NCBI GenBank assembly: GCA_002189035.1
Contig: CM007991.1
Location: 992,001 to 1,056,000 of the forward strand
Origin: Utricularia gibba
Taxonomy: Eukaryota; Plantae; Magnoliophyta
Direction: 5' to 3'
DNA: 64,000 nt
Below the pieces are notes generated by a model. The model had not been told where the DNA came from and made no database searches. It worked only from the letters and a program-made list of their open reading frames with translations. The position numbers and the translations under genes are program-made. Positions 44,771 through 58,403 of this stretch are shown here, piece after piece (position 1 is the first letter of the stretch; every line of letters starts with the position of its first letter).

Positions 44771-46003
44771 TTACTTCGTTCGGCGTGACCGAGGGCAAAC
44801 GGCCCTGTTATTGTAACGCCTTCTAATGACGATATCATCTGATATCATTTCAACAAGATTGATTAGCTTTTTAGCCCCGTATTCGGAAGCAACAAGGGGC
44901 CGTTGGAAAAGTTTTGCATATACTTTCGGAACTTTGTCAAGTGGCAGACGCCCACCTGACAACTTGAGCAACTTCAAAACTTGGGACTTCAAAGCTTTTA
45001 TATCCCGTGGCTGCTCAGGCATCCCAAGGGAACAAGAAGGCGGCTCAGTTGACGCAGACCGAAGAAGGTAGGCGGCCTTGTTATCGTTTTTTCCTGTAAT
45101 GCCGATGGCATCAGAGAACTTTTCCAACAGTTGGATGAGCTTTTCAGCCCCGTACTCAGAATAAGTAAGGGGTCGATGGAAAAGCTTCTTGTATTCATTT
45201 AGGATATCGTTCAGAGGCAAACAACCATCTGCTAGTTCCAGCAACTTCACCAGCTGGCACTTCAACTTATCTATGTCTCCTTGCTGCACAATAGTTGCTT
45301 CGCTCTTATCAGTAGAAGGCTGATCTGTAGCTGATGTTCCAGGTAAGGAAGATGAGATCTTAGCTGATTGAGAAGCTTCAGAACTGAGAGAAGTGGTCTT
45401 TGAACTACAGCTGCTTTCAGATAGAGATTTTGGTTCTTCTTGAATTTCCACGCACTTTTTGACAGAAGAACAACAAACCTGAGCTGGAATGTAACAGGGG
45501 ATCACAAAACCTTTCCCATGAGCCAAACTCGGCCAATCCCAAACGAATCTGCCGGGATTCCTCAGTGCAGATGAAACACGAACGCCTGTTGGAATGACAA
45601 GAATCACATTGTACCCACGCTGGCCCAAAATATGAAGTGTGGGAGCAAAATCAGCATCTCCGGTTATAAGCATAACAGATGATGGAGGACGGTTGTCTAA
45701 AGCGAAAAGGAACATGTCGACCAAGATTGCCTTATCTGCTGCTTCTTTTCGATTGTTTGGGACATCAACAATCTTGACTCCAGTTCTGTAGAAGCATTCT
45801 CTAAATCGTGTCGAGAAGGACACTAAGTCAGCAAATGCTGAAAACAGGGTGACTTCTCCCTCGATCATGGCATTGTTTTTTATGGCCGTCCTGATGTTAC
45901 CAGACACATCTTCAGGCAAAACATCACTAGGCACACCACAGTTCTCTATATCCCAGAAAATCCCTATGGGGCCTTTTACCGAACGCTGATCGGGTGCAGA
46001 CAT
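44771..46003 (-). CDS. NYN (PIN-fold) ribonuclease with two OST-HTH/LOTUS domains (limkain-b1/MARF1-like), 410 aa, intronless CDS
   Basis: IFWDIENC, AADKAILVDM and ITGDADF (conserved NYN Asp residues). LOTUS copies at ~45277-45065 and ~45004-44795 (LKxQLVKLL..G.LPL...EY..LF.RPL..SEYGA.KLI.L). Confidence 0.9.
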   Translation of the reverse strand: MSAPDQRSVKGPIGIFWDIENCGVPSDVLPEDVSGNIRTAIKNNAMIEGEVTLFSAFADLVSFSTRFRECFYRTGVKIVDVPNNRKEAADKAILVDMFLFALDNRPPSSVMLITGDADFAPTLHILGQRGYNVILVIPTGVRVSSALRNPGRFVWDWPSLAHGKGFVIPCYIPAQVCCSSVKKCVEIQEEPKSLSESSCSSKTTSLSSEASQSAKISSSLPGTSATDQPSTDKSEATIVQQGDIDKLKCQLVKLLELADGCLPLNDILNEYKKLFHRPLTYSEYGAEKLIQLLEKFSDAIGITGKNDNKAAYLLRSASTEPPSCSLGMPEQPRDIKALKSQVLKLLKLSGGRLPLDKVPKVYAKLFQRPLVASEYGAKKLINLVEMISDDIVIRRRYNNRAVCPRSRRTK

Positions 46004-49205: not shown

Positions 49206-50885
49206 ATGGACTCCATTTCGGACAGGTCTGTGAAATGTGAACACGATGATTTTGAGGGAGATGGTCCATTAGTCATCGAGGAGTGCACCGTACCTCGTGT
49301 GGTGGTAGAAGATGAATGCGCTGCTCTACATGAAATGGTCACTAAACAGCAGCTGACTATTCAGAACCTCATGTCTGAGTTGGAGGAAGAGAGAAATGCT
49401 GCTGCTTCGGCAGCCAATGAAGCAATGTCGATGATTCTGAGGCTTCAGAGAGATAAGGCGGAGGTGCAGATGGAAGCAAGGCAGTTTAAACAGTTGGCAG
49501 AGGAGAAAATGTCACATAATCAGCACGAGACATCAGTTTTAGAAGAGATGCTGTATAAGAGGGACCAGAAGATACTGTCTCTCTCATGCGAGGTACAGTC
49601 GTATCGTCAAAGAATGTTCACTTATGGTGCTTGTGACGCTGGTGGGGGTGCTGGTATGAACCGGAGTGCTAGTTTGAATGATTTTTCTCAAGGGCTAATT
49701 GATTATCCTGCGTATGAGATTTATCCTTCACTCAGGTGTTTCTCAGATGGATCTCCTTCAAATTTGAATGGTGATCATTTACACAGTGACATGGAGAAAT
49801 TTGCATTTTCTGAAAATGCACATTCTCTGGAACAATTGAAAGACTTGGAGTCTCGAATACATGAACTGGAGAATAATCCAACTCCTGCTTACCCTGCTGA
49901 AGAACTACCGAATCCAAAAAGTACACTTGGAAATGTAGTAGTTGGCCATTCTCCTGGAAAGCTTAAGCCTCTGAGGAAGCTTTCCCTGGACAGCATGAGT
50001 TCACCTTATGCCGTGAATAAAGAAGTTTGTTCTGATTTCTTCCTGAATTCAAGTGTCAAGAAGATGGAATTTTCGGATATAGAGGAGAGCTTTGATTTAG
50101 ACAAGATGGATGATACATCAGAACTCGAAGATGACATGGCTGATAGAATCTACACCGTGGATTCTGTTTTCCACGGACCTTCTGTTGCCTCTCCTAGAGC
50201 ATCGTTCATTTTTCCTGATCCTAGAGACCTGGAAATTCAGAAACTGTATGCAAGGGTTCATGCTCTCGAAGCTGATAGAGAATCCATGAGGCAAGAAATC
50301 ATCTCTGTTAGCTCCAATAAAGCTCAAATGGTATTGTTGAAAGAGATAGCTCAGAATTTATGCAAAGAAATGTCCCCATCAAAAAGAATAGCTGAGAGGA
50401 GGCAGCCTCGAAGCATGACTTTTTCCTTGAAATCAATTTTCAAGGTAACGATATTTTTAAAAATACAGTCCTACTATTAAAGAGAAACCATCCTTCATTG
50501 ATATTGATCTTCCTTTACGCTTGAGCTGACTTCTGTTATCTCATTACTTGCTGGCTGCCACAACGTACGTTCCCTGAAAATTTTTTTCCCCAATTTACAG
50601 TGGTTGGTCTCTAGCATTTGTTTCTGGAGGAAAAAGACACACAGATGCAGGTGCGATACCAGATGACCATAACACAGACACAAGTAGCTAATTTTGTTAT
50701 CTTCTCTTGTTTGTTTGAGGATGACAAATGTGCTTCGTTGTATTAGGTACATGTTTGAGGAATCGGCATACAATCTGTTGGGGTTGCTGATTCTCCTCGA
50801 GAAGAGTCATGGTCGAAGTTCTCATGAGTGGAAGTTCATCTTGAAAACACACCTGTTGAACAGGCCTCTACGAATAACTGTTTGA
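49206..50885 (+). CDS. MYOB7: Myosin-binding protein (DUF593/GTD-binding), MyoB7-like
   Basis: ELEEERNAAASAANEAMSMILRLQRDKAEVQMEARQFK; DRIYTVDSV; EIQKLYARVHALEADRESMRQ. Three exons ending ...RPLRITV*. Confidence 0.9.
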
Positions 50886-54981: not shown

Positions 54982-56323
54982 CATAACATTTCACTTTTAA
55001 GTCCACTAACTTAATGAAATGTGCAATTTGAAGCCAAGGAAAATTGCAAAAAGGCCCCTCCTCTTACCCATTTTTTCCAATTTCTCCCCGTTCGTCGGCA
55101 TATGTTGCACCAAGTCTAACCAACTCGGCGTCACCGCCGCTGCATGATGCCGGAAACTCCGACGCTGATTTTGTCGCCATTTCCGCCTGCAAGACTTCAT
55201 CGTTTCGAATTTTTTATAATTTGGGGCTATCGTTGCGCTGTGGGTGTTGCAACAAGTCCCAATGGTTTTCTCTTTTGTTAAGGGTAAGGGATTTTATCGT
55301 GTTTTCTTGGTTCGTAACTAGAGCGCATGTTTTTCTTCCTTTTTGCTTTATGACAACGACATAGTTCCAAAAGGCTTTTTTGTGTGCCTAGTGAGATTGA
55401 AATCACTGGATGTTTGTGCACTTATTTTGTGTGGTTTGAGTTGCAAAAGTACAAAACAAATGTCCTAGTGTTGTATGCGCTATGCAAACAAACATTCTGC
55501 ATGATGGTTTCATTAATTTCTCCGTTTTTAATTATTCATTTTGTATAGGAATGAAACCTGAAGATTCATTACCTTCTGCATCCGGTGTCATGGGAACTGC
55601 TTCTGCCGCTGTGTGGCAGGTAACATTCCACCTTGTAAATTAGCTCTGTGAATGCAGATAATTTGACATTTTGACTGTAGGAACATCCTTCAATGGTAAA
55701 AAAAGAAAGAATGATGTCACTTTATCAAGTCAACTTTGCATGCATTTTAGTATGATGTCACACAGCATTCCTACTCTCCAAATATTTTACCAGGTCCTTT
55801 CACTTTACTTACCACAACATCTTTTTTCGCATCCCTTTGCTTTAACTACCGTTAAACTGAGCGTTCGAGGATGGTCTATGAATACAACTGACAATCCGAT
55901 ACCTAGGTCTATACTACGCAATTCAGATTAGGTCTCTCCATACAACTGACATTCCAATGAATTGAAGAATTCTATCAATAGAACACTATTCAAGATGATA
56001 TTTTTCATTTTGAATTAGCTTAGTCCATAGAGCTTCAAGTCGGATCCACCTGACCTGATCTTTAGAAGATCTTGACACAAGTGGTGATAGGATTGTCACT
56101 CTATGTACTGTTCATATTCTATGTCATTGCAGGATAAATCTGGGTTGTTTTGGGTAGAGGTCAAGTCATTATAGATCGTTGCTTGATGATGATAGCAAGC
56201 ACACCCGAGCACTGGAGTTTGCTAACAACTCCCAACCAGTGGGACATCCACTTCTCAGTTGTTTATTAGCCCATGCATTGCATTATTCATGAGCTTTTTC
56301 TTCTTTCATTTCATGAACTAAGA

Positions 56324-58403
56324 ATGAGTGTTACAGAAGATGAGAGTGGGCTGAGGAAAAGAGGGGCTGGTTTAGGCAACTGGATTCGGATCGACTCCTC
56401 TGGCCAAGAAGTTGTTATGGATGTTGATAAACACATGTTCATGAGCCAGCTGCGGATACACGCCCGGGATCTCCGCATAATCGACCCCCAGTTGTCTTAT
56501 CCCTCAGCCATCCTTGGGCGCAAGAGAGCAATCGTAGTCAACTTGGAGGTAAATCCTTTGAGCTCGTTGTTGCTAATTTGATTGGATTTTGGATCAAATC
56601 TGTGTTGAGGTATGCTCATGTCGTAACATAGAACTGTTAGAAAAAACAAAAGATTTTTATCCCACAAAAATCAAGACAATATAAATCATAATTTTGAATT
56701 TCGTTTCTTGGTGTTTTGAGTAAATTTGTTTTAAAAATTCCAATTTTACAGCCTTTTTTTGTTGTCTCCTCCACAGCATATCAAGGCGATAGTTACATCA
56801 AGAGAGGTTTGCTTGGGGATCTGAATCTCCACAGTACAAGTGACGCATGCCTTGCTTCTGCTAACCAGTTCAGCATTCATTATTTGTGTTCAGGTTTTTC
56901 TCCGCGACCCATCGGACGACGACCTTTTACATGTAGTGAATGGCCTAAGGAGCTGCGTGAACCAAGCTGAAGAGAAGAGTAAGTGTCCTTCACCAACTTG
57001 TAGATGAGATTTGAACCCCATCTTTAGGCTATGCATCTCTGCAGATTCCTCCCCATTCGAGTTTCGGGTGCTCGAGGTTGCACTTGAAGCCATCTACGCT
57101 TATCTTTCCACTAGTGCAGCGGAGTTGGAGGGAACCATTTACCCGGCTCTAGACATCCTCACTTCAAAGGCAAGTTTTCTCTCCACCATTTAAGCATAAT
57201 TTGTGAATGAGCCGTAAGTGAAACACTATGAGAGTAACTAATGAGTGTTTTCATCTTCATTTTCCATTTTTCAATTATCTAGCCTATTCAGCTGAATGCC
57301 ATGTGTTTCTTATGAAGCCGCATTCAATCTTACGTTGAAGGTCTCAATCCGGAACTTGGAACGCGTACGGAAGTTAAAGAGTCAAATGACGAGGTTAACT
57401 GCCCGTGTGCAAAATGTACCCAGTCATCTTTACTCTTTGCAGCTCATATCCTTTCTTACCAGTTAGTTATCTCATCCCGCGGTGAAAATCTGGTGTGTCC
57501 AGGTTAGGGACGAGCTGGAGCATCTGTTGGATCATGAAAACGATATGGCAGATCTTTTCCTCTCTAGAAAGCCATCTACCACATCCTTGCAGTCTGGTTC
57601 TGGCTCTGGTCTCAGTAGCCGGTTCGTTGAATCAGGTCGTGTGTATGAGAAGAATGTGGAGCTTGAGCAACTACTTGAGGTACTCAGCTTAGGAAACAAT
57701 TGAAAAAATAATTACAGGGGCACCGGAGGATCATTGATCTGTTTTGGCTGCAGGCCTACTTCATGCAGCTGGATGCCACACTGAACAGATTATCCATGGC
57801 ATGGAACTCGACTCATTTCTTTTTCCTAATGGTGGGTTCAAGATCATGACTTGATTCCATCTTCATATTCGCAGCTTCGTGAACATAGTGACAGCACAGA
57901 AGGCTTCATCAACATCCAGGTAAACATGAATCACCATGGATACTTCTGCTTTCACTCACAGGAGCACCATCCGGGCTCAAGATGCGAACCTAACTCATTG
58001 CTTCACGTTGCAGCTCGAAAATCATCGGAACCAGCTCATTCAGGTCTCCCTTTTTCATTATTCTCATACTACCTTAACCATTGCTTCATTTACATTTTCG
58101 GGCTCATCTCAGATCGAGCTCCTGCTCAACAATGCGACGCTGTGCCTTACCCTTTTCGCGACGATTCCGTCGCTCTTTGGCGCAAACATACCGTATTCAT
58201 GGAACACGGGCCACGGATACATGTTCAACTGGGCGAGTTCTTGACATTGAACTGTGGTTTACATCAGTTGTATGGCAAAGGAGAAGCTAACCTGTGCTAT
58301 GTGCCTTCTGCTGCAGGTACTTTTTGTCACCGGGGCCGCCTGCGTTTTCCTGTTCTTGGCCATAAATCGCTATGCTCGTAGCAAAGGCGTCTTCCCGTCA
58401 TGA
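56324..58403 (+). CDS. MRS2: MRS2/MGT CorA-family transporter (MRS2-2/7/I clade), 347 aa, with GMN->GAN
   Basis: Eleven exons join in frame (1044 nt): [36 protein letters not shown]|[79 protein letters not shown] and GHGYMFNW. Confidence 0.93.

Follow-up and report, generated by a model that had tools for sequence, protein, structure and literature searches.

Introduction

Why Mg2+ channels of the CorA/Mrs2 family adhere so strictly to a Gly-Met-Asn (GMN) filter, and what role the poorly understood natural exceptions play (AMN and GIN in plants), is an open question. Here we describe a further exception, the triplet GAN, in an MRS2 gene on the forward strand of a 64,000-nucleotide stretch of the Utricularia gibba genome (contig CM007991.1, positions 992,001 to 1,056,000; hereafter the window, to which the Utricularia positions below refer). 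In human MRS2 the outer Mg2+ site (Mg-1) is formed by Asn side chains and Gly main-chain carbonyls, not by Met; a ring of Asp residues (D329), directly under a ring of Arg, makes up the second site (PMC10404273). The filter Met of TmCorA, together with the flanking aromatics, reinforces the hydrophobic interior of the loop (PMC3629940).

Natural plant paralogs in which one filter residue is replaced include OsMRS2-4 and OsMRS2-5 (AMN), OsMRS2-8 (GIN), ZmMGT6 (AMN) and TaMGT1A/B/D (AMN), and the function of such non-GMN MRS2/MGT paralogs is either unknown or reduced (PMC4613352, PMC9948656). These known cases are monocot proteins of other MRS2 clades with either the Gly changed or an Ile, whereas the GAN gene is a lamiid MRS2-2 derivative with Ala in the middle. 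ZntB and other GIN/GVN members of the family with two transmembrane segments and a GxN motif (2-TM-GxN) retain the G-x-N frame and differ in the middle residue, as the GAN protein does, and their filters are read as pointing to preferences for other cations (PMC4613352, PMC9948656, PMC6972854). By contrast with the GAN gene, which is a recent offshoot of an Mg2+ channel clade, the ZntB types are bacterial, anciently separate and have an architecture of their own.

The closest described systems are the MRS2-2/MRS2-I (AtMGT9-type) channels, such as Sesamum indicum MRS2-I (P0276) and Arabidopsis lyrata MRS2-2 (P0223), with which the GAN protein is 54-56% identical end to end. Common to both are two C-terminal transmembrane segments (TM1 and TM2), the FG-x-N-IPY-x-WN loop, the Arg ring and the TM1 Glu. 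The GAN protein differs from them in the filter (GAN for GMN), in two acidic stretches (DSTEGF for DDTEDY and LEN for LDN) and in three loops or ends that are 11-22 residues shorter; its gene, unlike theirs, has three GC splice donors, a long leader with upstream ATGs (uATGs) and an ancestral ATG that is spliced out.

The GAN triplet

The GAN motif is real, and so is the gene that carries it, an expressed and long-selected MRS2-2 derivative. The letters GGC GCA AAC, which encode G302-A303-N304, lie at 58179-58187 (+) at the end of TM1, in exon 10 of an 11-exon MRS2 gene. An earlier reading of the window made from its letters alone (the sequence-only reading) had reported GAN in place of GMN here, and both the genome letters and RNA of three studies bear this out: RNA contigs of four runs span exon 10 with zero differences at 58179-58187. 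Because the contigs of the three studies carry identical letters, GAN is not a sequencing slip, and a sequencing or assembly error as its source is ruled out. The sequence-only reading had excluded a slip on the grounds that ATG to GCA takes three base changes; the count is correct and the RNA excludes the slip, but the three changes need not be a barrier, as there is an easy stepwise route via GTG (Val). In place of the strict G-M-N of Mg2+-selective CorA, Mrs2 and Alr1 members, the protein thus has Ala as the middle residue of a retained G-x-N.

A survey of the motif across relatives, which the sequence-only reading had proposed, showed that GAN is absent from all 369 relatives collected, among which the motif scan counted 198 GMN, 10 GVN, 2 GVS and 1 GMS; nor was GAN found in the MGT/MRS2/CorA literature searched. 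The GVN filter occurs in ten otherwise canonical MRS2-2/I orthologs (83-85% identical) from Populus, Castanea, Alnus, Durio, Tetracentron, Spatholobus and Coffea arabica (P0165, P0167, P0174, P0207, P0212, P0261, P0263, P0264, P0269 and P0360). A Magnolia isoform (P0344) reads GVS and P0098 reads GMS. Judged from these sequences, the MRS2-2/I clade has natural variation at the middle position of the filter. The middle codon is ATG in canonical genes, GTG in a Paulownia paralog (see below) and GCA in the GAN gene, and given the natural GVN of canonical orthologs, GCA is easily reached from ATG in single steps (ATG>GTG>GCG>GCA). The GAN gene joins the natural non-GMN plant MRS2s already known, with GAN itself as a further variant.

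Two other features pointed out in the sequence-only reading hold up as well. In the alignment with 114 canonical orthologs the nearby acidic differences (DSTEGF for DDTEDY and LEN for LDN) are both real, and the acidic loop, which follows exon 3, is about 19-22 residues shorter than in canonical orthologs.

Gene structure and transcripts

Independent splicing of 56324-58403 gave 11 exons and 347 amino acids in the same frame as the sequence-only model, which had called the gene intact. The re-splicing upholds the frame, but the RNA does not bear out the start, as the main mRNA lacks ATG 56324. The features of the gene and its transcripts are:

55104..55283, + strand: leader exon A, untranslated, with ATGs at 55144, 55147 and 55262; X1 RNA contig, joint 55283>55549 (GT..AG)
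55549..55619, + strand: leader exon B, with ATGs at 55551 and 55590; joints 55283>55549 and 55619>56337 in X1, X2 and X3
56324..56336, + strand: ATG of the 347-residue model and four codons, intronic in the main transcript
56337..56548, + strand: coding exon 1 as spliced; tiny upstream frame at ATG 56340, first in-frame ATG at 56417, weak PF22099 match
56777..56806, + strand: exon 2, the same 30-nucleotide (nt) exon as in Sesamum and Coffea
56894..56978, + strand: exon 3, which lacks 66 nt relative to Sesamum (short acidic loop)
57045..57169, + strand: exon 4, followed by the GC donor gcaagt at 57170; joint 57169>57341 in X1 and X2
57341..57415, + strand: exon 5, from our own splicing and RNA
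57503..57679, + strand: exon 6, which lacks 48 nt relative to Sesamum (Ser-rich loop)
57754..57798, + strand: exon 7, followed by the weak GC donor gcatgg at 57799; joint 57798>57875
57875..57919, + strand: exon 8, whose canonical counterpart reads LREYIDDTEDYINIQ
58014..58043, + strand: exon 9, with Glu at the position of human MRS2 D329 (Mg-2 site) and the Arg of the Arg ring kept
58113..58232, + strand: exon 10, with TM1, filter and loop, followed by the GC donor gcgagt at 58233, partly retained
58317..58403, + strand: exon 11, with TM2 and the stop TGA at 58401-58403

All ten coding introns are spliced in RNA contigs, and with the leader included 12 of 12 joints are present across the three studies. 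Boundaries and phases of all 11 exons, every joint being confirmed by RNA, are identical to those of the Sesamum and Coffea genes. Among the pseudogene features checked, no stop, frameshift, lost splice site or lost intron was found from M32 (ATG 56417) to the stop; the one feature that resembles a lesion is the absence of the upstream ATG from the main isoform. A retrogene origin is ruled out by the presence of the ten ancestral introns, and a tandem copy within the window by tblastn, which gives a single copy. The coding introns are very short (66-228 nt, compared to 86-1641 nt in Sesamum).

The main transcript (X1, X2, X3) begins ~1.2 kb upstream of the coding region, and its leader joint 55619>56337 falls 13 nt past ATG 56324. 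Because the leader exon that ends at 55619 joins 56337, ATG 56324 is intronic in this transcript, whose leader introns are 55284-55548 and 55620-56336. The first in-frame ATG of the main mRNA is 56417 (M32, in the good context gttgttATGG), from which 316 amino acids are encoded. Six uATGs precede it (55144, 55147, 55262, 55551, 55590 and 56340); the last four (55262, 55551, 55590 and 56340) share one frame that is out of frame with MRS2 and stops at TGA 56352-56354, 62 nt before ATG 56417. A minor X1 contig retains ATG 56324 via an acceptor before 56133, which brings in additional uATGs; it departs from the reference at 8 of 274 letters and probably represents another haplotype or copy. ATG 56324 sits in the exon in which the canonical Sesamum and Coffea genes start, and their N-terminal coding part is unsplit by an intron. 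As codons 5-31 of the GAN gene are still 71% identical to the canonical sequences, they were translated for most of the history of the gene.

Three of the ten coding introns are of the GC-AG type, a feature that had escaped the sequence-only reading: the donors at 57170 (gcaagt), 57799 (gcatgg) and 58233 (gcgagt) are all spliced in RNA, and their counterparts in Sesamum and Coffea are GT. (The RNA joints given as AA..TG and GG..CA are in fact GC..AG once the stated ambiguity of 1-4 letters is allowed for.) GC-AG introns usually make up ~1% of plant introns, and three of ten would be very unusual at that rate. If the share in this genome were ~10%, three of ten would have P ~0.07, and the GC donors would then be a general habit of the genome and not a sign of splice-donor decay peculiar to the GAN gene. 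Intron 4 (donor 57170) is removed cleanly, with a depth of 0 inside the intron. The weaker GC donors are those of introns 7 and 10, both of which are kept in ~30% or about a third of the contig depth: for intron 7, an unspliced contig (57769-57903) has a depth of 16 compared to 41 for the spliced form in X1, and 4.7 compared to 9.7 in X2; for intron 10 the depths are 5.3 unspliced and 12.4 spliced (X3). Since the depth in the other introns is near zero, the unspliced contigs reflect retention and not DNA carry-over. Retention of either intron leads to a premature stop.

Placement in the MRS2-2/MRS2-I clade

With exon 1 as query, plant MRS2 proteins were found, and the closest full-length relatives are MRS2-2/MRS2-I proteins at 53-56% identity, with Lamiales (Sesamum, Salvia, Penstemon, Erythranthe) at the top. 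The maximum-likelihood tree places the GAN gene inside the lamiid MRS2-2/I clade (support 100/97) on a terminal branch of 1.96 changes per column, ~14x longer than the median of 0.14, and a constraint that holds Lamiales together is not rejected (p-AU 0.38). Against a profile of 114 canonical orthologs, which carry PF22099 and PF01544, the GAN protein scores 441 bits, compared to 791 for Sesamum, 583 for a hornwort ortholog and 245-423 for other MRS2 clades. With exons scored singly, PF22099 reaches 24.6 bits (exon 1) and 12.4 bits, where the cut-off is 27. The two C-terminal hydrophobic segments (residues ~277-305 and ~314-339) align with canonical TM1 and TM2. Of the residues that are near-invariant in the clade (246 columns at >=95%), the GAN protein keeps 173 of 236, whereas the hornwort ortholog keeps 210 of 243. 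The TM1-TM2 loop is well conserved, and the altered TM1 residues beyond the filter are mostly conservative.

A second long-branched Lamiales MRS2-2 derivative is encoded in Paulownia fortunei (KAI3459454.1, P0089; end branch 1.76). It shares with the GAN protein the derived states TLCLTL in TM1, LFG before the filter, LE-HRN and KWVL/NWVL, and both have lost DDTED with a Tyr>Phe change; the two differ in that overall identity is 39% and the Paulownia filter is GVS. The GAN gene, KAI3459454.1 and the tandem neighbour of the latter group in the best tree with weak support (66/0), where long-branch attraction is possible. As a query, KAI3459454.1 retrieved itself and then only canonical MRS2-2/I proteins, with no close kin in the database. 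On Paulownia contig CM033115.1 two divergent MRS2-like genes lie in tandem (L002 10001-17557 and 21823-27557). The first of them, the GVS gene, contains exon 4 twice, as identical copies separated by ~1 kb, and exons 2 and 5 are missing from its annotated protein.

Selection on the coding frame

The sequence-only reading had named a decaying duplicate, with a ratio of nonsynonymous to synonymous substitution rates (dN/dS) near 1 and no expression, as a finding that would overturn it; instead, dN/dS is ~0.16 and spliced RNA is present in three studies. In the comparison with Sesamum the GAN gene has a dN of 0.279 and a dS of 1.80 (ratio 0.155), and a canonical pair has 0.051 and 1.278 (ratio 0.04). 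A three-taxon split assigns a dN of 0.263 to the GAN branch compared to 0.016 and 0.035 for the other two, so that the amino-acid rate of the GAN protein is about ten times (8-16x) that of its relatives. The ~272 raw nucleotide changes on the GAN branch include no stop, and free substitution would keep the frame open with P ~0.001 (5000 simulations). Differences at codon positions 1, 2 and 3 number 104, 68 and 176, and the four exon-length changes (-33, -66, +3 and -48 nt) are all multiples of three. All splice sites (20 of 20) are usable, the changes at essential sites being three T>C at donor +2 only, the one change that the spliceosome tolerates. Together, dN/dS, the open frame, the in-frame length changes and the splice sites argue for long-term selection and support a retained, divergent channel gene.

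Recent variation in the transmembrane exons follows the same pattern. Of the five single-nucleotide polymorphisms (SNPs) between runs in exons 10-11, four are synonymous and the fifth is V>I; those in exon 10 (58166, 58172, 58175 and 58208) are all synonymous. The variant X1 contigs at 56129-56402 (X1 record 2) and 58109-58233 (X1 record 5), which are 97-98% identical to the reference, represent a second haplotype or a very recent copy. Over exon 10 the variant contig shows synonymous differences only, and GAN is kept.

The filter in its structural context

The solved Mrs2 channels (human 8IP3, fungal 8Q8P) align gap-free with a canonical plant relative over stalk, TM1 and filter, from the acidic ring to GMN. 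Both are distant (E about 1e-18 to 1e-21) and mitochondrial, and no solved filter has Ala. When the GAN protein is mapped onto them via the canonical relative, Gly, Asn and Arg are kept, Met is changed to Ala and Asp to Glu. The kept Gly and Asn ligands, and a Val that is common in normal orthologs, weaken the case for a dramatic change such as the different cation selectivity or dominant-negative role suggested in the sequence-only reading.

RNA runs X1-X3 also include contigs that have 57374-57418 (45 nt) in common with the GAN gene and beyond it run on into MRS2 codons of the canonical type (SSRNLDRIRK, RDELEQLLDD), which shows that these samples express a canonical paralog as well.

Discussion

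The explanation we favour, tentatively and at somewhat less than even confidence, is that the GAN gene encodes a channel subunit that is under selection, has a low output and carries a loosened G-x-N filter. The gene would be a lineage-specific, fast-evolving, live duplicate of an MRS2-2/MRS2-I (MGT9-type) Mg2+ channel gene, and its product most likely remains a subunit of a pentameric 2-TM-GxN cation channel that is made in small amounts. The Asn304 side-chain ring and the Gly302 carbonyls that hold the hydrated ion would be intact, whereas the Met that packs the hydrophobic loop interior would have been shrunk to Ala via the Val intermediate common in the clade; the inner acidic ring would have Glu for Asp, with the Arg ring kept. 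Such a pore is expected to still pass divalent cations but to be less selective for Mg2+, less conductive or less stable, and the GAN subunit could work by itself or in mixed assemblies with the canonical paralog that is expressed alongside it. Translation probably starts at M32, with the first strands of the N-terminal domain lost, and the six uATGs together with the ~30% retention of two weak GC-donor introns should limit output.

Several observations weigh against this explanation. Single GMN substitutions reportedly leave CorA and Mrs2 without Mg2+ transport (PMC4613352), and the non-GMN rice MRS2s (AMN, GIN) failed to complement (PMC9948656). The ancestral first-exon ATG is removed from the main transcript, which places six uATGs ahead of M32, and introns 7 and 10 are partly retained, at about a third of the contig depth. 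Because dS is saturated, dN/dS on the GAN branch can only be bracketed at ~0.2-0.4, and the amino-acid rate comes near to that of near-neutral evolution if the duplication was recent. Near-invariant positions are changed in 63 of 236 cases (27%), including about half of TM1. Between the reference and the variant contig, all three differences in codons 1-31 are nonsynonymous (codons 3, 8 and 17), which also fits translation from M32. No GAN ortholog was found with exon 1, the read-through frame 57930-58241 or the Paulownia protein as queries, the full spliced protein not having been among them; the read-through frame (exon 9, intron and exon 10) gave no candidate among proteins of 57-182 residues, which is not evidence of absence.

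In view of the start-codon loss, the uATGs and the intron retention, early decay is a real possibility: the gene, although long selected and still expressed, would have recently lost its function, and GAN would be one of many changes that are no longer policed. We consider this somewhat unlikely. It would account for an ATG 56324 that is intronic in the main isoform, for the six to ten uATGs that precede the frame in both isoforms, for the exclusively nonsynonymous haplotype differences in codons 1-31 and for the premature stops that retention of introns 7 and 10 entails, and a branch ~14x that of relatives, with 63 near-invariant positions changed, and a Paulownia GVS relative without close kin in the database point in the same direction. 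Yet the 316-codon frame is open, the splice sites all work, the length changes are all in frame and the recent SNPs in the transmembrane exons stand at four synonymous to one conservative; moreover, plant genes that work can likewise have leaders rich in upstream reading frames. Less probable still is an ordinary Mg2+ channel, in a clade that tolerates Met, Val or Ala at the middle filter residue and in which GAN changes little. Although the GVN of ten otherwise 83-85% identical MRS2-2 orthologs, the role of Gly and Asn as the ligands and the partial complementation of a Salmonella mutant by maize ZmMGT6 with its AMN filter (PMC9948656) are consistent with it, Ala is far smaller than either Met or Val, there are further differences in the remainder of TM1, in the DDTED stretch and at the inner Asp ring, and the reported loss of Mg2+ transport on single GMN substitutions (PMC4613352) speaks against such tolerance.

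It is very unlikely, in our view, that the product has no channel of its own and acts as a non-conducting regulatory or dominant-negative subunit that tunes the flux of canonical pentamers. The canonical-type MRS2 transcript in the same RNA runs (loose ends 57374 and 57418) could supply the partner, hetero-pentamers are possible in the CorA family (PMC6972854) and a low expected output would suit a modulator, but a start at M32, with its loss of N-terminal strands, may weaken the protomer contacts needed for assembly, and the idea is pure conjecture. Quite unlikely, too, is that the genome holds a radiation of MRS2-2-derived channels whose filters diversified under selection, with GAN reached via GVN; if it did, nature would have carried out a mutational scan of the CorA-family selectivity filter, and its members would be tuned to non-Mg2+ cations or to regulation.

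The GAN gene offers a clean example from nature: of the filter only the middle residue, which is not a ligand, is cut to Ala, the gene is expressed and selected, and a plausible Val intermediate is present in normal orthologs. It could show how far the middle residue governs selectivity as opposed to loop stability, although its value in this respect is limited by a probably low output.

Neighbouring genes

Genes are densely packed in the window, at about one per 4-5 kb. With Lamiales as the nearest relatives and with the short introns of the GAN gene, this looks like a compact genome of a lamiid. Two neighbours upstream of the GAN gene are long single open reading frames (ORFs), and the exact product of neither is in the gene-position collection:

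44771-46003, - strand: long single ORF (44774-46003) with NYN and LOTUS domains (PF01936, PF12872)
49206-50480, + strand: long single ORF (49206-50477) with a Zein-binding domain (PF04576)

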